Shown here piece after piece: positions 18,904 through 35,909 of a stretch of DNA of 64,000 nt (its first letter is position 1; the number at the start of each line of letters is the position of its first letter). This DNA is from Macrostomum hystrix. Taxonomy: Eukaryota > Animalia > Platyhelminthes. The DNA lies in NCBI GenBank assembly GCA_950097015.1, contig CATNEN010000038.1:682001-746000 (forward strand), in the 5' to 3' direction. The position numbers and the translations under genes are program-made. The notes beneath the pieces were generated by a model. The model worked only from the letters and a program-made list of their open reading frames with translations, was not told where the DNA came from and did no database searches.

Positions 18904-21900
18904 TCACTTGCGCGCCGTTGACGAAGCAGATCGCAGATCCCGGGAGCCCCGAGCGCTTCCGCCGCCTCCCGAGGATCGGCCGATGCCGCTGGCGGCAGCA
19001 GCAGCCGCGGCGTCGACTTCCCAGCGCTCGAGCTCGGCGCGCATCAGCTCCTCGGCCCGCTGGCTGCGTTCGGTCTGGCTGAGAGAGCCGCCGGCGGAAT
19101 CCTCGATGCCGGCCAGGGCGTCCAGCACGCGGGTCATGGCCTCGCGACGGCGCAGCTTGGCACGCTCCATCAGCTCAAGCTTGAGCAGGACAGTGTCGAT
19201 CTTCTGCACAATGTCGCCGATGCTCATCTCGACGCGGTCGACGCGCTTCACGAGAACCTGAAGACAAAGGGCCAAAACTATTGAAGGTGTGATCGGTTCT
19301 GGCTCTGATTAAATAATTATACGAGCATTTATTTTTGATGGAGGGGATGTGGGCACTGGTGAATCATTCCAACTCAGGTGTCAATTCTGTCTATTTCACT
19401 GACTCCTGAACACTCTCACACAGTGGTGTACACCCGCTCAGGATTTTTTTTGTGTGGTACTGTACACTCACACTCTGCCTTTGAGTTGGCTTCACTCAGG
19501 TTTTACGGCACGCACCAAGACATTCTCTTCCTGGCTGTGCTTCAAATTAATGTTAGATTCAAGCTTAAGGACCTTGGTGCCAGTGGCAGACGCATTTACC
19601 GCTCATGACTTCCTGAAAGGCATTGTATTTCTTATAATTGACACACCTGAAACTCCGCTGTGCTGACAAGCTTTCGACCACCGCCTCCGCCGCCATGACC
19701 ACCGCGGCCTCCGCCTAAGTTTCCGACCGAGCTGGCTACCGCTGCGCCAGACGGCGGCTCCCCATCCGACTCCAGGCCGCCCTCGTGCTCAGCCGACTCG
19801 TCCTCCTCAGCTGCGGCAGCTTCTCCGCGATTGATCATATGGTCCAGGTTGGCCTGTTGGTTGTTGTTTTGAGTAACTAGGATTTTCCACCTTACTTTGC
19901 AGTGCGCGAGCGTAAGTTATTGCTCAATGAGCAACTAATTCTCACCCGTTGGCCCTCCAGCTCAAGGTGCATCTGGCGCTGCTCCTCTTCGTTCAGGACG
20001 CGATCGCCATCGAGGTCGAACTTAGCAAACAGCGCCTCGATTTCGCCGTCGGCGTAGCCACGTCTTAGTAAAAAAATATTTTGTTTGCAGTAAAAATTTT
20101 CAAACTATGGAATATAACCTGTAAGCCTTAAGCTGTGGACTGCTCAACTTACTGCTTGAGCTCAGAACGCCACTCCTCAAAGTCTAGCTGCTTGTCGTTG
20201 TTCAAATCGGCCGACTGAATCGCCTTCTGAATGTCGACAATCTTGTCCCGGCGCAGGTTCAACTTTGACAGCATCCTGCCGGCCCTCTGGCGGAAGTAGT
20301 CGGTCATCTCGAATTCATTCTGCTGCATGGACAGTTCCGACTTCACCTGGCTGTAGGTGTCGTTGATTATAGCCAGGAACATGTTGATCAGAACGAAAAA
20401 CACGAAGAAGACGTACAGGATGAAGAAAATGGGGCCCAACACACGATTGGCTGTCTGAAGCGAGTTGAAATCGAAGTCGCCCAGAATGATTCGAAACAGG
20501 GTGAACACCGACTGCTGGAACTCGCGGAAATCTTTCACCTGGGTGCCGAAGATCAGATAGCCGAGCTGGGCAAAGGCAAAGAACACGATGAAAAACATGA
20601 CAGCGAATCCCAGCAGATCCTTGGCGCAGGCTCCCAGAGTCGAGCTCAGCTGAGTCATGGTCTTGTTGAAGCTGATATACTTGAAGATCTTCACCCACGC
20701 GAAGAACACGGTCACAGCGATGCCGTGGTTGAACTGCTGCTGCCAGTAGGACAGAAAGTCAAAGTCGGGGTACTTGTTCTCCTCTTGCAACAGGTTAGTG
20801 AGCTTCTGGCCAACTGCGATGGTCCGGTAGACATTGAACACGGCACAGATGATGCTGATTACAATGACGATTACGTCTAGACAGTTCCAGAAGCAGAGGA
20901 AGTAGCGCCACTTGTGCCGTTTGATTTCGATGGCCTCCTCAACAATGTAGTAGAGAATGAATACCATGAAGACGCACTCGCAGGTCATGATGAAATAGTC
21001 CAGCGGCTCAACATAGCGGAGCAGCTTCACGGTGCGCAGATCCCACGTTGGTGTGCAGCCGCCTAGACGGGCGGCATTTAAAGTTAGCTTATTGTTGTGA
21101 TAAAGTCCAATTCATCCGTCTCTTTGCACTCACCAGTTGCCATAAACTCCGTGACCAGCCGTATCACGCAGAACAAGTTGATATTCGCATTGTAGAGTGT
21201 GAAGTCCACAAACACTGCCCGAGTGCCCCGGTTCAGCCACAGGCCGTTAAACAGGCTCTGCAGGATGGCCTGCGTGGTGGCCTTGTCTCGCGACAGTTCA
21301 ACAGCGAAGCCACCTCCATCGTAAGAGGAGATCTCGGCGTTGTGCGACCTACCGTCGAGCTCACTTTCGCTGCGGTATTGCCAGGCGCTCCCGTTGCCGA
21401 CGCCGAAACTGCTCCTGTCCGTCACCCCGAAGCTGTACATGGCGTAGCAATTGGAAATCTTGCCCTGAAAGTAGGACGCGATGTTGCAGGACTGGTTGCC
21501 GACTCGAAGCTGTCTCAGGCGCGGCACGCCCAGCAGCTTGTTCTCGTAATAGATGAAGTTCTTCTCGCGAGGATCGGAGAAGTTGTTGTTGTTGTACCAG
21601 GTCTCCCAGTACAGCCCGTTGATCAGAGGTCCATTCATGAACTGGTTGGGTATGAGGTGAACTCATGCCAGACTTACAATTGCATAATCAGATATTTTTA
21701 TTTCTTTTTTGTTTTAAAAAACTTACACTCCACCAGTCGCCCATGTTGCCCACGCTGCGATACGTGTTAGTCGTATTGTCGATTTTGGTATCCAGAAACA
21801 GGTCGCTCAGCACCTTCGTGTAGTAGTACATTGTGCTGCTGGTCATACCAAAGGTAACTGCAAGTTTATTTCATTATTACATAAAAATCAACTTATAAAG

Positions 21901-22744: not shown

Positions 22745-24694
22745 TTCAGAAAGGTGCACGCAGGTATCAGGCTTTCCGAGACTCGAGATTCAAAACTCAA
22801 TTTCCTCAGGGCTCGGGAGGGTTTGTTCAATTTTCTCCCTGCGAGATCCGTCCCGCTGGCTTTCAGGCCGATTCCCAGCTCTTTATGCTGAACTCCACAG
22901 GTAAACACACGCGCGAGATCCCAACTGCCGTGCAGGGTGGGGTGTAGGAGCCGGCGTTTTTCTCGACGCCATAGAAACCGCGCAAAAATATTAGAGGCCC
23001 ATTGCAGCAGGTTTGAGTTGGCCTTTTGCTGGGATTCCTTTCCCAAGGTTGAAAATTTTGAGAACAAACGCAAGAGCTCGTCCAACCACAGGGGGGAGGA
23101 CGCTTTCCCAAAGGCAGGAAGAGGGTTTTTTCTATCGAAGGAAGTTGGACTGCTTTTGCGCACACACGGCTGCATTCAGTGTGGGAGAGGCCCCCGCTGG
23201 ATGGAGCTCTGAGAACCCTGGACCAATATTTGTCCTGGAAACAGAGCAAACAAAAGCCTCATGGTGGGTTCCAGCTCGCCCGGAGTATTGACCGACGCGG
23301 GCCCAGCTGTCGCATATTCGCTGGTTGCCCAGCTGCAGGTGAAACAATGGGAAAGGCAGAAGATGAGGAATATGCGGAGACTGCAGTTTGGCAAAAACCG
23401 AGCGGTTAGTCGATCGATGGGGTTTCATTAATGGAACTGCATAAAAGCCTGCAGCTGTTTCACTGTGCAATGAAGTAATCGCATTCAAGCGGCGAAAGCA
23501 AATTAATTACACGTGTTAGCTCATTAGCTCTTCTGCCTCTTGTCGATCGTAAGCGTACGAATCAACCATCTTGGGTATGAAAGAAGGCATTAAAAGTACA
23601 AAATAAATAGAAAGTCTGAAATCTGTGAAACTCAACACATAATATGGCTATCCTATTGTTCCTTACTATATTAAATAGCCAGCTTTCGCAGCGGAGTTCA
23701 GGTGTGCACACATGCACAGGTATCGTGTGTTCCACAGACGGCTGCGTGGTGTCTCGACCGCCCTCAAAATACATTTTAGTTCGTGCAACGGCGCATATTA
23801 TTCGACTGAGTTTTATCCAACGATTGAGCATACTCACGACGTGCGACGAGCGAAATAAGTTAAACACTAGACGAACTGTTCCAGCGTTTATTTATTTCAG
23901 TGGGTAAATTAATAAAAATATCAGGTATATAATATATTAAAAGGAAACATATGTATATATAATATTATTTATCTTCCTTCCCACAACATTCTTCAATCCA
24001 GCTGTTGAATTTTACGGACAAGTAGGAAAAGAGCAGTTACACAAAAACACATAAAAAAGTACTTCGGGAAAAAAATCTATGTATTGCAGGTCCAGCTCAT
24101 AATAGCGGCTGCGAATATTTAAAGAATAAAGGCAAGTTGTACAAGTATTTAGAAGGTAAAACTGATTAGTACAGAAGATAGAAAATATTGCAAATAGTAT
24201 AGAAGAAGTAAAAGTGCATATAAGCAAAAAATAAATAGGTCGAAGATCACGTCTGCATAGTAGCAAAATGGGCTCGGATTGCGAAGGAAACAGCTCATAG
24301 CTTTGGTTTCACGAGCTAAAAGACGATGCAAAGAACGCCAGAGAGTTGCAAGCCTCCACAACAAAGAACATCAGAGAGTTGCTAGCTAGCTTTGACATGG
24401 AAAAACGGAGAATTTCGAAAATTATAGCTTTTAAGTTTAGTCGTACCTATGTGTACAACAGTCAAATGTGTACTCAGGTAACTAATAATTGTGTACAGTA
24501 CATGTCAATGAAATTAATGAACGAAACTACACTCTGAATAGTCCAGAGAACAGTTACGTAGATATTATAGAGCCAAGCTGTCTACAATGATTCCAACCAT
24601 ATGCAAGCTCCCGTTTAAATAATCATCAAGATTCCGTTGTACCAACGCTCTAGGTACCAAGGCTCAACTGCGAACCTGCGCGACTTTGCGAGTG

Positions 24695-27600
24695 TCAATT
24701 CTCGCCAATGAGGGCCAGAAGGATCTTGCAGTAATCCCCGCTGGTATCGTCCTTGATCCACTGGGCCAGGCTTTGACCAAATTCCTTCTGGAAGGCGTCC
24801 TTGATCTGCACCATGTCAACTTCGCAACGGGAGATCACAATGCGCAGCAGGACTTGGTCGTTTGTGCCTGTGAAATAAGTTAAAAAAGTACTTTTACCAT
24901 TTTGGTGCCGCAAAATTTTCTTGCTTCGATTATCAAGAAAGCGGCATTCAGCTTTGACTTGATAACCAAACTTTTAGTTCTAGCACTTAATGCGCTCGCT
25001 AAAGATGCACAAAAAATGAGGCCACAAATGTGTATTCTGTGTCCTCCAGTTGTAAAGCCACAGTTTAACTCAAGCGACTGAACTCACCAAGGCCCTTCAT
25101 GGACTTTTGCAGAGCTTTGGCGAAGTAGGCCGGCTTGTTCTGCACGCAGCGTACCAGCGTCAGCATGGCATTGAGCAAATCGCCAGACATCTCAGACTTC
25201 AGCGAGTCCTCCAGCGTCTTGCCAGTGAGGCCCTCGTACTCTGCGAACACCGCTCGAAGATGCGCATTGTTGTTGCCGCAGAGGATTTCGTTGAACTTGC
25301 TCTCGTCGGTGCCCCACTTGCCGATGCCGGCTTCCTGCAGCGCCTGCGCGTCCTTCTTGGCCTGCACCGGGTCGAAGGAGCTTCCCTCCGGCCTGGCGCC
25401 GGTCAGTAGGGACACCAGGATGCGCTTGAAGTGGCCGGATGTCTCGGACATGACGTCAGCCTCCAGGTCAAGGTTGAACACTGGAGTTCAGGTTCAATAT
25501 TTTAGAGTCGATTGTGCTTACTCGTATACAAGGATACAAAAGCTAATCAAAGCGCTGTACTCACTGTTCTTGTAAGTCTTCGTAATTTCCTGCACCTGGG
25601 CCTGGGTCCGGGTGCAGATGATCTCAATCAGACAGTCCTCGTTGGTTCCTAGGCCCTTCATTGCGGCCCGCAGTTCCATGGCGTCGTACTCTGCGGCACC
25701 GAGGCACAGGTTCTGACAGATTTTGTTGAAATTTCCGCTCAATTCGCTATTCAATTCGGCTTTCAGATCTTTGCCGAATTTCATCTTGAAGGCGCGCACA
25801 ATCTCCATGCGCTGGGTCATTGTGCGGTGGCCCAACACGTTGATGATGCTCTCCTCGTTGGTGCCAAGACCTTTCATGGCATTCCGCAGTTGTTCAGCGT
25901 CCGCCGTGGCATTGAATCCAGGATAAGGCTTCAGAGTGCCGTCCTGGACGTACTCCTCCTGCTGGAAGTACGCCGCACCCACCGGCTCCGGTGGCTTCTC
26001 TTCTGGCGCCTTCAGCTTGATCGCGTCGGCCTTCTCGTGGCTGGTCTGCTTGACCTCCGACTCCACCTGATGATTCGGCGGCGGCGGCGGCGGAGGCGGC
26101 TGGCTGCGCTTGGCTGGCAAGTCCTTCTTGGTCGGCGTTGGCGGCAGCTTCGGCTTCGGCGGCGATGGCTGTGACTTGGGAGCATGCAGCGGCTTCTTGT
26201 AGCCCGGCTTGCCGATATGCACAGTCAGCAGGTAGGAGTCATCGGACTCGTCGAGCTCAGCTGACAGAACCTGCGAAAAAGCGGCACTCTTGCTATAGAC
26301 AGCGTATTCTGCGTTTTTCCTGATACGAGCATCAGGCTTAAAATTCTGGAGTTCTACATACCAGATTTTCTCCAACAACAAGCAAGTAGTTGGAGAATAC
26401 TGAAAATACCTAAGCCTAATCTTTAGGCGCTACGAACCTTTCCGAACTTTGGGTCCCCGACGGCGGCTTGAAAGTTGGCATCGGTGCGGGCGTACTGCAG
26501 CAGGTGAGCGTAAACGTGCTGCAGCTGCTTCTTGAAGTCGCCGTCACCCTTGCTGACTGGCAGACAGGCAGGATCAGCGGCTATGGGCTGCTGCTGCTGC
26601 TGCAGCGGCTGCTGCTGCTTCTTTGTGTCCTCAACTAGCCTGCGAATGTCCTGCAAGGTGCTCTGCCTAGTTTCGTCCATTCGTTGACTCAGCTGAGCAG
26701 CTATGAGGTTGAGCTGTTGAGGTGTCACGCCCTGTTAATAGATACAGGCGATCAAATTTTATCACGAAAGGAACACCACTATTATTACTGAGTCAGAGAA
26801 ATGGGCACAATGGGAAGGGCTGTAGTGGAATGATGCGTCATTTGATGCACAGTAACTATGCACCTGGAAAAATAGTATGATTGCTTTTCTACAAGAGGCT
26901 TTTTTCTTTAAACAGTCCTATCTTCGAGCTCTATGGTTATTTGGCCCGGCATAAATGTAACGATCAACCTGAGCCAATCACAGCTCATGCTGTAATCGGA
27001 TGGCATTGCAAATTCCACTAGCTTATCCAAATTAAAGTCTTCGACTGAGCTAACCTGTTCCGGGGCTGGCAGAGCCTGCTGTTGCATAGCCGGCGGAACC
27101 AAGCCGCCGCGAAAGTTGACATTGTTCGGCGTGCGCACCTCCCAGCCCATGACGCCGCCGGCTGGGCCGCCGAAGCCGCCTCCGTTGCCACCGTTTGGCG
27201 GTCCGCCGCCGTACAAGTTGATCTGCGTTCCAGAATGATTGACAGCCGCGAAGCCCTGATCCGGCGGAATGCCCAGCTCATCCAGCGGCGACGGTGATGG
27301 CTCAGCCATTTTTGCGTCCCACGCGCGACGTCTATTAGTGGAGTTGGCCGGCCCTTTGCGGGTGCGCAGCCCGTCTTCAAGGTCGCTGTCCCAACTGCAA
27401 TGGAGTGCATCCACGTTTGATTGAACCTCTCGATTCAGGGACTCAAAAGAAAAAATTAAATTTATGTAGCTGAAGTTGTCTCTATAAAGATTATCACTCA
27501 CGCCGTGGACTCCGTGGTCACACTGCTATCGTCGTAGCAGTCTTCAGTTTCATTCCAACCGTGAATATCTTCGCAGTGATAAGTCCTAGTGGTCACAACG

Positions 27601-28402
27601 CTCATCTGTCGGGTGACTCGGTGCATAGCAACCGCCTTGACAACACGCTTACCAGGTTTGAGGCAGAACGGAGCGCGGTATTTGAAGGTTACCTCTCGAC
27701 CGTTCACCTTTCGCTGCTCCGGATTTGGGCGCGTTCCGTCGGTGGTGAAATAAATGTGGCAGTTGGTGGAGTCTGCAAGTTATAAAGTGGTTTCTTGAGC
27801 TGGAGTAGTGAAACAAGCAAGCAACTTACGAACTAACAAGTCGACTTGCTAAAAAACTAGATAATCGAAAATCTGTTACGAAATCATTCCGCAAAAAAAA
27901 ACTATTTGAAATCGGTAGACAACTGTAGTACGGCCAGTGGCCCCAGCCAATGAGCGGTGCTCCCAAGGCTGTGTACATCTGTTCAGTCCGTGGACTGGGG
28001 TAACCGCCAAACGCATCGGAACTTCCACTAGAAGCTTTAGCGAATTAGGCGTGTGGCTCAAAGACTCAAATTGTCTCTCTCGAGCTGATATTTTAACTCT
28101 CAGCAATCGGTCAAAAGTCCGATGCTGGTAAACGCTACAGGCTACAAGCTTCCGTATTACCAAACTGAACTATTAAAACAAAGTATATTATTAAACAAAG
28201 TAACTAACTCAATGGCAATATAATCTCGCTACCTAACTATAGTGTGTGTTAGCTAACATGGTGGGTAAAAACGAAGCCACAATATCTCACCACAGGACAT
28301 TTCAATGTAGGTGGCCGAGTCGATGCAGTGAGCCGGCTTTCCAGGTACAGGCCCACGCAAGGCAGTCAGCACTGGAGCCGCAATGCCGCCAGCTGGAGGC
28401 AT
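24695..28402 (-). CDS. Annexin with a long N-terminal extension carrying two DZANK1-like domains (Fn3-associated/CHB_HEX_C-like domain and the DZANK1 central conserved block), about 762 aa, 7 exons
   Basis: Exons 28402-28291, 27772-27502, 27394-27055, 26731-26438, 26270-25565, 25480-25088, 24867-24695; all GT-AG, total 2289 nt in frame. Four annexin repeats (AMKGLGTNE x2, GIGKWGTDES, SMKGLGGTND..ISRCEVD..DDTSGDY). N-terminus has IYFTTDGTRP..TFKY..VKAVA. Confidence 0.85.
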
Positions 28403-29156
28403 CTGCAACATAGGCCAGGCCCAATCAGCTTTCTTCATATTATTTAATGGCTTAGTCTGCATACTGATATCAAAATATTGAACACAAATATGTGTGATTA
28501 GCTTTAAAAAGTTAAAGTAAAAGGTTAGGTTTCAAGTTTAAAAAGAAAAGGTTGAAAAGTAAACTTTTTATTGAGAAAAAACTGCTATGCTATCCTTAGC
28601 ATATACACTAGATTATTATATTAATAGGCTCGGATTAAAAACGTAATAAAATAACAAATTTAATTGAAAGTCATTTATTGCATGTTTAGTATAACAATCT
28701 TTAAAATTATTTAAATTTCACAAAAATTTAAAATTTCAAAACCATGTTCAAATTAAACAATGTGATATAGAATAGTCAGTTAAAATAAAATTCTATCGTA
28801 TATTTCATTGTCAAATTAAAATAGTATACTTATTCTTGAAAGAGCAATGGAATGAAGAAAAACGGTACAAATATTTTTTTGGTAGTCCAGTTTAGCTAGA
28901 CACAATAAGTTGGGTCCATCAGAAAAAGCATACTCGTAAATCTATAGGTGAATCAGTTTTACTTTCTTTGGATTTCATATTTCAAACATCATATGTCTTG
29001 CCTACATTAAACGAAACTTTCTGTTAAGATTAATTATGAAGTCATGAAAAAAATTTCCCTTGGTATTATGGTAATATTGTTATTAGTATCGGAATATGCA
29101 ACTTATAATATAGCACCTTAAAATATAAAAACTTGTTTTAATTTAATAATGAACTC

Positions 29157-31594: not shown

Positions 31595-34500
31595 TGTTGC
31601 GAAAATCCGACCCTCAGACTTGTTTCTTACTCTGGTACCCCATGCCTGCGCGTGTGGGGTGGGTGACTTATTGGTTTTTTGCTCTGCCTACACCCCCTGC
31701 CCCCCCAATATATATGCATTGTTCATCACCCTCTCAGTTCAATATTATTTAAATATAAGGTCTGCGAACTGCAGCATGACTCGACAGTTTTATTCTAAGC
31801 AAACAGCTATTTCCACAACATGGCGCCCAATGTAAAATAAAGAGAACTTTTCCTACAGTCATCGTGCGCATTTAACATTGATTGACTCAGCAAGTGGCTC
31901 TCCGGTCTTCGGCTGTTCTGTTCGTTCGGGCGAAGGTGGTCGAGGCGAGAGTCTGGATTCAGGTGCATCAGCGCGCGGTGGATTCGCTCCTATTTGGCCA
32001 TTCTGAGGCGACGGTTAGCTAACATTACGGTAGATGCGCTCACTGTAAGGACACTCTAAATTTTAATCATTTTTCGTGTTCGATGTCCATTCGAGTTATT
32101 TTCCTTCGATTTTTCGCGCTCCTTGTTTATTTCTCGCTCTTGCTTTACCCCCTACCTTCGTTGGTCGCTGAGTCGCTCTCTAGTTGGGATTGCTTGCTGC
32201 CAGTTTCCTCAGGACTCTCAGTTCCTCTTTTTTCGCCGTCATGGTTCTCTCAAAAGATGAGCTGGCAGCTTCGATCCGCAAACGGGCAGGTATTCGGTGC
32301 AGCATCACTAAGATGGTTGGTAAGGCGGAGCTGGTGTTGGACAAAGGTGTGCAACATGAAGTCGAGCGTGCGGAGACGGCTGCGTACCTTGACACACTCA
32401 AGTCAAGTCTGAGTGCGATGCAAGAGCTGGATGACGCCATAGAAGACTCAATTTCAGATGACCAGTTAGAGTCGGAACGTGACGATAGGGAGCGTTACGA
32501 GATTCGGTGTCTCACGTGCATAAAGATGTTGGAGGCTGCTCTTTCTCAATCTTCTAAGCCGTTAGTTGGTTCGCCTCCCACTCAATCTTCGCCGCAACCT
32601 CAAGTAAAGTTGCCTAAGCTTCGAGTTCCGACCTTTGAGGGGGAAATTTCGACTTGGCAGTCCTTCTGGGACCAGTTCGACTCGTCAATACATTCAAATT
32701 CTTCTCTGTCTGATATAGATAAGTTCAATTATCTTATGGCCTCCCTCTCGGAGTCGGCGAAGTCCTGCATCAGGGGTCTCGCGGTCACGGCGGGCAACTA
32801 TGCTACTGCGGTTGATATCCTAAAGGAACGTTTTGGCAAGCCGGAAGTGATTATCCAAGAGTTAATGCATAAATTCTCAGAGATCCACCTATCAGAACCG
32901 TCTTTGCGCGGTCTTCAACAATTTCACGATGATCTCAGCAAGTCTAGCAAAGTCTTGGGGATTCCGTGGGATGCCGCAAAGGACACTCTGCATTTTGACT
33001 TTCGGGCAGTTCTAAGCTCTATTCCAGAGCGGCCACACACGAAGCGATCGATGCTAGCAGTACTTGCTAAACTGTTTGATCCACTTGGCCTCCTCTCCCC
33101 AGCAGTGACGCTAGTCAAAGTGCTATTTCAACAGTTGTGCGCACAAAAGCTGGGGTGGGATGAGCTGCTACCGATGGATATTGCGTCGCAGTGGTCCCGC
33201 TGGCTTGACTCGCTCCGGAAGACTCACTTCGAGGTTCCGCGCTGCGTCATGCCAGAGGCTGTCAAGGCCAACAGCATGGAGATTCAGCTCCATGGCTTCT
33301 CTGATGCCAGTGAGTGTGCCTACGCCGCTGCTGTTTATCTTCGGGTGGTGGACCATGATCACGGCTGCGCCTCATCTGTGCTCATCATGGCCAAATCACG
33401 TGTCGCTCCTCTAGCAGACATCAGCATTGCGCGTCTGGAGCTCTTCGGTGCGCTTATTTTGGCTCGGCTGATGGACTTTGTTTCCACTCAATTTCCTGGA
33501 GTTAAAAGACACTTGTGGACAGACAGCATGAATGCTTTGCAGTGGATAACTCAGGAAACTCGGATTCGTCCAGTCTTTGTTCAGAATCGTGTCGCAGAGA
33601 TTCGCAAGCTCTCTTTGGTGTCCGAGTGGCAACATGTCCCGGGGGAGAGTAACCCCGCTGACATTCCCTCAAGAGGCTGCCTACCCGAAAGGCTTGTGAA
33701 CAATTCAATGTGGCAGCAAGGACCAGCGTTCTTGCAGTCAATCGATCACCGTAGCGGCATTGACAACTGTTTTGCTCGAAGCGTTGACAATGCGTCGCTC
33801 GGGTTTCAACCTGCTCAACCTTGTCCTGAGCTAAGCTCTTGTCTGGTGACCACAGAGCAACCAGAAAGCGTTGATAGCTCGACTGAAAAGAGTATTCTGA
33901 ACATTTTAGACATTCACAACTATTCTTCGTGGGCAAAACTGACTCGGGTGGTGGCATGGATGCGCCGCTTCCTTAGCAACATTCGAGCGAGCAAGTCTGG
34001 TTCGCCAGTGAACCTGCGAAAGTCGTTGATTACCGCAGAGATTCACGCCGCAGAGGTGAACATTCTTCGTGATACGCAGTCCAAATTTCTTGTGCCAGAA
34101 GTTAAACATCTTGAGGGTGTTGGTCCTCGCACTACACTCGTCCAAAATCTGCAGTTGTTTCTGGGCGACGATGGACTCATCCGCTCGAGAGGTCGACTCA
34201 ACGACACGGTTCCGTTTGAGACGAACCATCCTGTACTGATACCTGGTAAGAGTCAGCTAGAGACACTCATTATCCGACATTGCCAACACACAATTTTTCA
34301 CGGGGGAGTTTCTGCAACAATTTGTAAAATTCGTGAACGCTTCTGGGTTCTGAAGGCCCGACAGCGGGTGAAACAGATTGTCTCAGAGTGTGTGACATGC
34401 CGGAAGCTCCAGGGACGGCCTTTCACAGTGAACATGTGCCGCAGCTCCCTCCGTTTCGTTTGTCTGATGTCAGAGCATTCCAGACAGTGGGCTTGGACTA

Positions 34501-35909
34501 TGCTGGTCCGATCCTCTATCGGACGGGGGAGGGTGGTAGCGCTTCTGCAAAGTGTTATATTTTGCTCTTCACATGCTCTGCGACTCGCGCTGTTCACATC
34601 GAGCTCGTAACCAGCATGGAGAGCGATCAGTTTCTACATGCTCTTCGCCGCTTTGTAGCTCGCAGAGGCATCCCATCTGTAATAAGTGACAACGCCAGAA
34701 CCTTCCGTGCGGCTGCCAAAGTTATCGGCGCGTCCGTCTCTGAAGATCTTCAGGACTTCTGTTCGTCGAAAAGAATCGCCTGGCATTTCATTCCAGAGCG
34801 GGCTCCGTGGTGGGGAGGCTTTTGGGAGAGGCTGGTCGGTATCATCAAGGTGACCCTTAAAAAGGCCGCTGGTCGACTGCTACTCACGTACGATCAGTTG
34901 CTAACACTCGTGCTGGAAGTCGAGGCCGTGGTGAATTGCCGTCCGCTTCTGTATGTCTCATCAGGTGAGACTATGGAGATAATCACTCCATCGCATTTCA
35001 TCACGGCTGCTCGTCTCACACGAGAGCCAACAGAAACTCTCATCGAATCGCCTGAGTCCGAAACAGTGCTTCCCTTGCCACGACGATTCAAGATGCTGCG
35101 AGCAGCGTTAGATTGGTTTTGGAATCAGTGGAGGACCTCCTACCTAGAGGCTCTGCGTGAAAAGGCGGTGAAGCACCATCCTCAAGGTCGAGCGCCGAAA
35201 GTGGGAGAGGTAGTACTGATCTCCAGCGAGGCCCACCAACCCAGGCTGAAGTGGAAGCTGGGAGTGATTGAAGAGGTAAAGCCTGGTCGGGACGGTGTCG
35301 TGCGGTCTGCGATCCTGAGGGTTGCTGGAGCGAGGGATTCCCGGCGATGGGAGCGTCTCAGGCGACCAATCCAAGCTCTCGTTCCGCTTGAAATAACCTA
35401 AGAATTTTCGTGTTTGGTCTGCCGAAAGTTTCAAAGTTTTCCGTTTTTTCTATCGCTTGCTAACTTCTCAATCCTTCGGTTATTTAACTTTGTTTTTTCT
35501 TATACGCTAATCGCTAGCTACAAGCATACTCATTTTCTTTGATATTTATACATGCAAAATGCAACTCACTATTTTGGTTAAGGTTTCAATATTCATGCTG
35601 CTTATTTTTCCTTTCCTTTCATTTTTTTTCACTTTGTCTATGGTATTTTTACCTTGCTCAAAAGACAACGTCTTTTGGGGGGAGTGTTGCGAAAATCCGA
35701 CCCTCAGACTTGTTTCTTACTCTGGTACCCCATGCCTGCGCGTGTGGGGTGGGTGACATATTGGTTTTTTGCTCTGCCTACACCCCCTGCCCCCCAGTAT
35801 ATGTACATTGTTCATCACCCTCTCAGTTCAATATTATTTAAATATAAGGTCTGCGAACTGCAGCATGACTCGACAGTTTTATTCTAAGCAAACAGCTATT
35901 TCCACAACA
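31595..35909 (+). mobile_element. BEL/Pao LTR retrotransposon, internally deleted (no protease or RT core), 4315 bp
   Basis: LTRs 31595-31820 and 35685-35909 (TGTTG..CAACA, about 5 differences); 5-bp TSD GATGA; PBS TGGCGCCCAA at 31821; PPT GGGGGGAG at 35677-35684. Confidence 0.96.
32241..35401 (+). pseudogene. BEL/Pao gag-pol remnant: Gag (DUF1759-like), RNase H (Pao A17-type), integrase; frameshift near 34430
   Basis: KLPKLRVPTFEG..WQSFWDQF..DKFNYL; KVLGIPWD..FDPLG; LHGFSDASECAY..AKSRVAP..RLEL; NPADIPSRG; zinc finger H..HGG..CVTC; GLDYAGP..SDNA..PWWGGFWERLV in a second frame. Confidence 0.9.

Follow-up and report, generated by a model that had tools for sequence, protein, structure and literature searches.

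A spliced-leader trans-spliced annexin gene of the flatworm Macrostomum hystrix with a DZANK1-like front half, and its relatives in six phyla

Background

The N-termini of annexins determine what each annexin does, and DZANK1 is a ciliopathy-linked protein. A locus of the flatworm Macrostomum hystrix appears to bring the two together and raises the question of what kind of protein it encodes. The stretch of DNA analysed here (the window) comprises 64,000 nucleotides (nt) of contig CATNEN010000038.1 (assembly GCA_950097015.1, positions 682,001 to 746,000, forward strand), and a first reading of its letters alone (the original prediction) had placed at 24695-28402 a chimeric gene in which two DZANK1-like domains are fused to an annexin core, with a possible role in coupling membranes to the NINL/dynein machinery in a Ca2+-dependent manner. 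Is this a single gene, is its front half related to DZANK1 specifically, is the combination peculiar to this worm, and what could such a protein do? We consider it highly probable that the locus is one expressed, trans-spliced gene that unites an annexin core with a DZANK1-derived front half, and that its product acts by a mechanism in which Ca2+ would dock a DZANK1-derived cassette on membranes.

Results

A single, expressed and trans-spliced gene

The open reading frame (ORF) list and the raw sequence together define seven exons on the minus strand, with a total of 2289 nt, i.e., 762 codons and a stop (Table 1). All six introns are of the GT..AG type, the phases (0/1/2/0/0/1/1) are mutually consistent, and the continuity of the frame over the seven exons was checked by phase arithmetic. 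The end of the DZANK1-like block (VLSAELDESDDSYLLTVHIGKPG), a Pro/Lys linker and annexin repeats 1-2 follow one another in exon 5 as a single open frame, and the join between the non-annexin and annexin portions is therefore independent of any splice.

A search of sequencing runs returned four runs of one study containing 54% of the sampled words, which is approximately the exonic share of the stretch. Over 24500-28700, the Logan contigs of runs X4, X5 and X6 have 0 mismatches, and the gaps in their alignment coincide precisely with the six predicted introns (CT..AC when read on the plus strand). In each run, one contig contains the 3' untranslated region (UTR), exons 7, 6, 5 and 4 and the end of exon 3, and another the remaining part of exon 3, exon 2 and exon 1. 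The contigs of X5, X6 and X1 continue past 28403 as a 23-nt loose end. Read as its reverse complement and extended by the G at 28403, this end reproduces exactly the final 24 nt of the Macrostomum spliced leader (35 nt, sequence from PMC8629364). Given that the contig ends match the leader, trans-splicing of the mRNA uses the AG that immediately precedes the ATG, and exon 1 is the first exon. The gene is thus expressed, spliced and spliced-leader trans-spliced. Its 5' UTR consists of the spliced leader alone; the terminal ATG of the leader is adjacent to and in frame with that of the gene (ATG ATG CCT), so that translation could begin one codon earlier.

The original prediction of seven phase-consistent exons forming one ORF of about 762 amino acids (aa), with exon 5 physically joining the non-annexin segment to annexin repeat 1, therefore holds at the level of intron borders, codon count and contigs alike. 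Exons 1-4 and the annexin exons, which might have turned out to belong to separate transcripts, are linked in these contigs, exons 3-7 on one and the leader with exons 1-2-3 on the other.

A front half shared with DZANK1

The exons of the window were searched singly, and the orthologue of Macrostomum lignano (P0001) served as the full-length stand-in. Long proteins of two kinds were recovered by a HMMER search with exon 2, the closest combining Fn3_assoc with annexin repeats and the more distant combining Fn3_assoc with a double zinc ribbon (DZR) and ankyrin repeats. This latter set (Fn3_assoc+DZR+Ank) is carried by the DZANK1 comparators, which come from a sponge, a hagfish, Ciona, a hemichordate and an oyster and bear that name in their sources. 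The Pfam family Fn3_assoc (PF13287) was recognised on exon 2 (E 3.3e-8, 34 bits vs a cut-off of 23), the same exon matched the canonical DZANK1 of the same genome (contig C34) with 1e-16 in BLASTP, and a profile-profile alignment of the N-terminal domain with DZANK1 reached E 3.3e-44 over 104 columns (hhalign). For the central block, the alignments were first trimmed of the N-terminal domain and of the C-terminal parts, and the comparison then gave a probability of 98.9% (hhalign, E 2.3e-17, 74 columns). At the level of single sequences, exon 4 was matched to the upstream ORF of the own-genome DZANK1 over 24 aa only (BLASTP, E 2e-4), and exon 5 found nothing in the next exon of that gene (BLASTP, E 1.4); the central block is cut at different intron positions in the two genes, and profile comparison is thus needed. 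Its consensus in the fusion family reads PVSxGxG...QLxHxYAHLLxYA...F......GK.ISA..DE.DDSYLLT, and the DZANK1 counterpart includes.EF......MG.

In Pfam searches of every exon (E<=1) we found no zinc ribbon, no ankyrin and nothing beyond Fn3_assoc and annexin. Similarly, neither the double zinc ribbon (PF12773) nor ankyrin was found in P0001, and a genome-wide DZR search had no match in this gene. Sequence and profile comparisons show that both non-annexin blocks are homologous to DZANK1 specifically, as had been proposed from family knowledge for exons 1-2 (the N-terminal Fn3-associated domain) and exons 4-5 (the central block); the suggested profile check proved significant for both, and the proposed replacement of zinc ribbons and ankyrin repeats by an annexin core was borne out by Pfam on the exons and on P0001. 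The two proteins have in common the N-terminal Fn3_assoc beta-sandwich including its MxAGxIxxP lead-in, probably a TQ-type motif in the disordered region after this domain, and a central SPGxGxW..Q.DH...HL..Y....F......G block with a beta-hairpin (the pattern SPGxGYW..DH..HL is present), whereas the window protein differs from DZANK1 in having neither double zinc ribbon nor ankyrin repeats and in ending with an annexin core. It is not a DZANK1 orthologue, because the double zinc ribbon and the C-terminal ankyrins were both looked for and are missing, and the two canonical DZANK1 genes present elsewhere in the genome designate it as a paralogous offshoot. The N-terminal half descends from a DZANK1 duplicate that kept the Fn3_assoc sandwich and the central block and lost the zinc ribbons and ankyrins.

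The annexin core and the protein model

Annexin repeats (PF00191) were recognised on exon 5 (E 5.8e-37, two stretches), exon 6 (3.5e-28, two) and exon 7 (2.7e-16, one, the rest of repeat 4), and four repeats are found in P0001 (E 4e-96). The closest solved structures of the core are those of annexins A6, A4, A5 and A7. Type II Ca2+ sites read GLGT in repeats 1, 2 and 4 and KWGT in repeat 3, with the acidic residue 38 positions on being E, E, E and D (spacing in the two intron-split repeats counted exon by exon). By every sequence test applied the protein is an annexin; its last 315 aa form a standard core of four repeats, in each of which the type II Ca2+-site motif is intact. Like ANXA7, ANXA11 and the eight-repeat ANXA6, the protein thus has annexin repeats, canonical Ca2+ sites and a long, partly disordered N-terminal extension. 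Unlike theirs, however, this extension contains two folded DZANK1-derived domains and an invariant linear motif and is not merely of low complexity. An AlphaFold2 model of P0001, built from 37 family sequences, provides the segmentation listed in Table 1, in which confidence is given as the predicted local distance difference test (pLDDT).

An old family in six phyla

The best match of exon 2 is a member from M. lignano, 91% identical. The orthologue from this species (PAA61558.1 / A0A267EJ83, 764 aa, labelled 'Annexin') has the same architecture; what the gene of the window adds, in another species, is transcript proof of all junctions and the spliced leader. The same architecture recurs in further flatworms (several Schistosoma, Trichobilharzia, Echinostoma and Anoplocephala), in annelids (Owenia, Paralvinella), nemerteans (Lineus, Tubulanus), the brachiopod Lingula and Priapulus, and in many molluscs, where it usually comes with eight annexin repeats and the label 'annexin A6-like' (mollusc and priapulid members together range from 8 to 12 repeats). 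When members of the six phyla are aligned, the order of parts is Fn3_assoc, NxSGTQxNxxG, helical segment, central block, linker and annexin core. In databases, members go by "Annexin", "annexin A6-like", "annexin A7/11" or 'annexin A11'.

The range given here is to be read as a minimum. Starting from the Priapulus member, a search recovered no further member among ecdysozoans, deuterostomes or cnidarians (there was a weak annexin-only coral match, E 2.5e-5), a result that owing to limited sensitivity does not show absence; our searches overall, which were non-exhaustive, likewise failed to yield any arthropod, nematode, deuterostome or cnidarian member. The survey across animals that had been suggested with the original prediction thus returned members from six phyla, and the idea of a singular chimera has to be abandoned in favour of an old multi-phylum family that is present in public protein sets and coexists in the same genome with canonical DZANK1.

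Three fusion-type genes (that of the window and one each on contigs C7 and C37) and two canonical DZANK1 genes (C34 and C39) are found in this genome, and an oyster also has both a fusion-family member and DZANK1. The exon-4 block of the C7 gene is 76% identical to that of the window gene, and M. lignano P0085 may be the counterpart of the C37 gene. A tree calculated from the N-terminal 125 aa (unrooted and short) contains a branch with 98/94 support that splits the fusion from the DZANK1 N-termini, with the exception of P0123, which sits on a long branch inside the flatworm fusion clade. This protein (884 aa) has Fn3_assoc and ankyrin, and no zinc-ribbon match; it may represent an intermediate architecture, or else an artefact. 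From these sequences we infer a single old fusion after a DZANK1 duplication, at the latest in an early protostome.

In the searchable literature we found no description of the family or of its relation to DZANK1, DZANK1, Fn3_assoc or zinc ribbon appearing together with annexin only as incidental co-mentions, and surveys of helminth annexins contain no mention of such an N-terminus. The family is already public under generic annexin names with automatic Pfam domains; what is new is the recognition of its relationship to DZANK1, not the gene.

A conserved TQ motif

Among short elements, conservation within the family is highest for the motif N-[HY]-S-G-T-Q-[IV]-N-x-[WYF]-G, which lies in a region predicted to be disordered. 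Six of its positions (N182, G185, T186, Q187, N189 and G192) do not vary in any of 37 sequences, and the motif was found in 52 of 56 family proteins. Shortly before their central block, i.e., in the same relative place, DZANK1 orthologues have TQT.GL[FY][FY]P (in one group [VI]Q[VA]G). LC8 binds TQT-anchored strands in disordered regions. Its optimal motif has been given as VSRGTQTE, in which the two positions beside the Q tolerate hydrophobic residues or threonine (PMC6607443), and G-T-Q occupies the corresponding positions in the motif of the window gene. The DZANK1 complex 'exclusively contained' the LC8 proteins DYNLL1 and DYNLL2 (PMC4617706). Intronless LC8 genes exist in this genome, and a complex prediction with two copies of LC8 (ORF L022:1498-1764, minus strand) and residues 34-75 of exon 3 scored 0.05 vs a mark of 0.34, which neither supports nor counters binding. 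By analogy with DZANK1, recruitment of an LC8 dimer by a motif of the NHSGTQINLYG type is conceivable, and we put it forward tentatively, as a somewhat doubtful proposal.

Other features of the window

The coordinates of all features are collected in Table 1. Downstream of the gene and on the same strand, ORFs at 20149-21030 and 21084-21638 resemble by eye a polycystin-2 / TRP-type cation channel, and on the plus strand two ORFs of 808 and 337 aa (32184-35401) resemble, again by eye, a retrotransposon pol with an integrase part. Intron 1 contains, at approximately 27940-28016, a short (about 75 nt) dispersed repeat with at least 191 candidate copies in the genome (76-95% identity); it is common to many unrelated transcript contigs, with loose ends on both sides, and an Rfam search of intron 1 gave no match.

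Table 1 Features of the Fn3_assoc-annexin gene, segments of the modelled M. lignano orthologue (P0001) and related loci of the same genome
Feature	Position	Strand	Remarks
Acceptor AG for spliced-leader trans-splicing	28403..28404	-	directly 5' of the start codon; contig ends match the leader
Exon 1	28402-28291	-	ATG at 28402; 37 codons + 1 nt; N-terminal lead-in (MPPAGGIAAP.., conserved), then the first strands of the Fn3_assoc beta-sandwich
Exon 2	27772-27502	-	bulk of the Fn3_assoc / DZANK1 N-terminal domain
Exon 3	27394-27055	-	predicted disordered; Gly/Pro-rich stretch; carries the invariant motif
NHSGTQINLYG, candidate LC8/DYNLL-type TQ motif	27208..27240	-	exon 3; putative function
Exon 4	26731-26438	-	helical segment, then start of the DZANK1-like central block
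Helical segment VTPQQL..DETRQ..DIRRL	26627..26731	-	first part of exon 4; conserved across phyla; predicted helices in P0001
Central block, first half	26438..26572	-	last part of exon 4 (PVSKGDGDFKKQLQHVYAHLLQYARTDANFQAAVGDPKFGK); hhalign vs DZANK1 and BLASTP 2e-4
Exon 5	26270-25565	-	end of central block, Pro/Lys linker, annexin repeats 1-2
Central block, second half	26199..26270	-	start of exon 5 (VLSAELDESDDSYLLTVHIGKPGY); beta-hairpin; hhalign and model of P0001
Pro/Lys-rich disordered linker	25947..26198	-	middle of exon 5; low pLDDT in P0001
Annexin core	24698..25946	-	four repeats over exons 5-7 (exon 5 to 25565, exon 6 25480-25088, exon 7 24867-24698); two introns inside
Exon 6	25480-25088	-	middle part of the annexin core
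Exon 7	24867-24695	-	end of the annexin core; stop at 24697-24695
3' UTR	24500..24694	-	extends past 24500; contigs of exons 7-4 unbroken through 24500-24866 and 288-579 letters further
Beta-sandwich, confident	P0001 residues 1-107		pLDDT >90
Disordered	P0001 residues 108-248		pLDDT <50
Two helices, moderately confident	P0001 residues 251-284		pLDDT 56-69
Small alpha/beta unit = central block	P0001 residues 312-363		pLDDT 81-89; strands 345-352 and 357-363
Disordered linker	P0001 residues 371-439		pLDDT <50
Annexin core	P0001 from about residue 450		pLDDT mostly >=90
Second Fn3_assoc-annexin gene, full-length	C7:2103700-2107610, locus L018	+	orthologous to M. lignano P0145, 66-97% identity per exon
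Third, divergent Fn3_assoc-annexin gene	C37:3084670-3088980, locus L021	-	P0001 matches at residues 44-87, 309-336 and 479-763
Canonical DZANK1	C34:4935900-4943920, locus L020	-	N-terminal ORF and two DZR hits; matches M. lignano P0069 to residue 759/812, most of the ankyrin region
Canonical DZANK1, more divergent paralogue	C39:6067500-6073260, loci L019/L001	-	

Discussion

How might the parts of this protein work together? A rise in Ca2+ would dock the annexin core on acidic phospholipid membranes, as is established behaviour for annexins, and the DZANK1-derived cassette, held on the flexible Pro/Lys linker, would then present its protein-binding surfaces at the membrane. Were the disordered TQ motif to bind an LC8/DYNLL dimer, two annexin molecules would be paired (membrane bridging) or tied to LC8-containing assemblies. 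The original prediction had gone further and envisaged a coupling to NINL and dynein. In DZANK1, the zinc-ribbon region (aa 244-317) is where the contact with NINL has been mapped (PMC4617706); because this site is absent from the window protein, NINL binding is not expected, and the proposed coupling is weakened accordingly. By analogy, the only one of DZANK1's dynein links that could be retained is the one to DYNLL1/2 (LC8), through the TQ motif. That the Fn3_assoc sandwich, the TQ motif and the central block constitute an autonomous cassette for the recruitment of LC8/dynein light chain, joined to the annexin core in early protostomes, is the boldest form of this idea, and we regard it as unlikely to be correct as it stands.

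Several points weigh against this picture. The anchor of the motif is TQI or TQV and not the canonical TQT, and its strongly conserved aromatic flanks could point to another partner or to an intramolecular strand. Binding of Ca2+ and lipids is predicted from the site motifs, and to our knowledge neither the Fn3_assoc domain nor the central block has a known function even in DZANK1. On the transcript side, no contig spans the whole mRNA, the two contigs sharing only 25 nt (27118-27142) in the Gly-rich part of exon 3; the continuity of the mRNA across this exon is deduced from the exon being uninterrupted and from the orthologous full-length annotated proteins. The runs, moreover, are not recorded as RNA and are taken as such because the introns are exactly removed and the spliced leader is present.

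It is against this background that other explanations have to be judged. Hand-built gene models carry a general risk, and given that all seven exons never occur on a single contig, one could suppose that two separate genes in head-to-tail order, one DZANK1-like and one for an annexin, were wrongly merged; this has hardly any probability left, for exon 5 alone holds DZANK1-like and annexin sequence in one frame, single contigs link exons 3-4-5-6-7 and the leader with exons 1-2-3, the identical architecture is seen in >40 annotated proteins of six phyla, and two paralogous loci of the same genome repeat it. The merged-genes reading of the locus is already contradicted. A different objection concerns the motif, i.e., NxSGTQxNxxG may be a strand that docks back on the Fn3_assoc sandwich or on the central block, unifying the DZANK1 cassette, and not a partner-binding motif. 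The conservation of its flanks (one aromatic, two glycines) indeed exceeds what is usual for LC8 motifs, and in the model residues 181 and 187 are classed by DSSP as isolated bridges. The segment has, however, a pLDDT of only ~31-36 with no stable strand in the AlphaFold2 model, and DZANK1, which binds DYNLL1/2, carries the canonical TQT at the corresponding site, so that we hold back-docking to be improbable.

The N-terminal half could also serve mainly for self-association or condensate formation, as in annexins A7 and A11, its DZANK1-derived domains being oligomerisation modules and not LC8/dynein adaptors; oligomerisation or phase separation would then be driven by the disordered, Gly/Pro-rich exon 3 together with the helical segment. 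Consistent with this are the GGGPPNGGNGGGFGGPAGG stretch in exon 3, the predicted disorder of residues 108-248 and 371-439 in the orthologue, the naming of some members as 'annexin A7/11' or 'annexin A11' by their sources, and the modelled helices at 251-284, which could make a coiled coil. The Gly-rich stretch is, however, specific to Macrostomum and missing from most aligned family members, and conservation across phyla concerns the folded domains and TQ motif rather than a low-complexity composition. We thus consider a mainly self-associating front half a rather poor bet, and favour the annexin with a DZANK1-derived cassette that Ca2+ would bring to the membrane.

Conclusions

In this family the annexin N-terminus has two folded domains derived from DZANK1 and an invariant linear motif that probably has the same origin. 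The family can be seen as a natural dissection of DZANK1, as its members have kept the cassette without the zinc ribbons and ankyrins, and the retained parts must therefore work on their own. It is present in schistosomes, tapeworms and molluscs, and also in Macrostomum lignano, a regeneration model (PMC10468722). If the proposed mechanism is true, these proteins would constitute a Ca2+-triggered link of membranes to LC8-containing, possibly ciliary or centrosomal, assemblies, and would show the role of the uncharacterised half of DZANK1.

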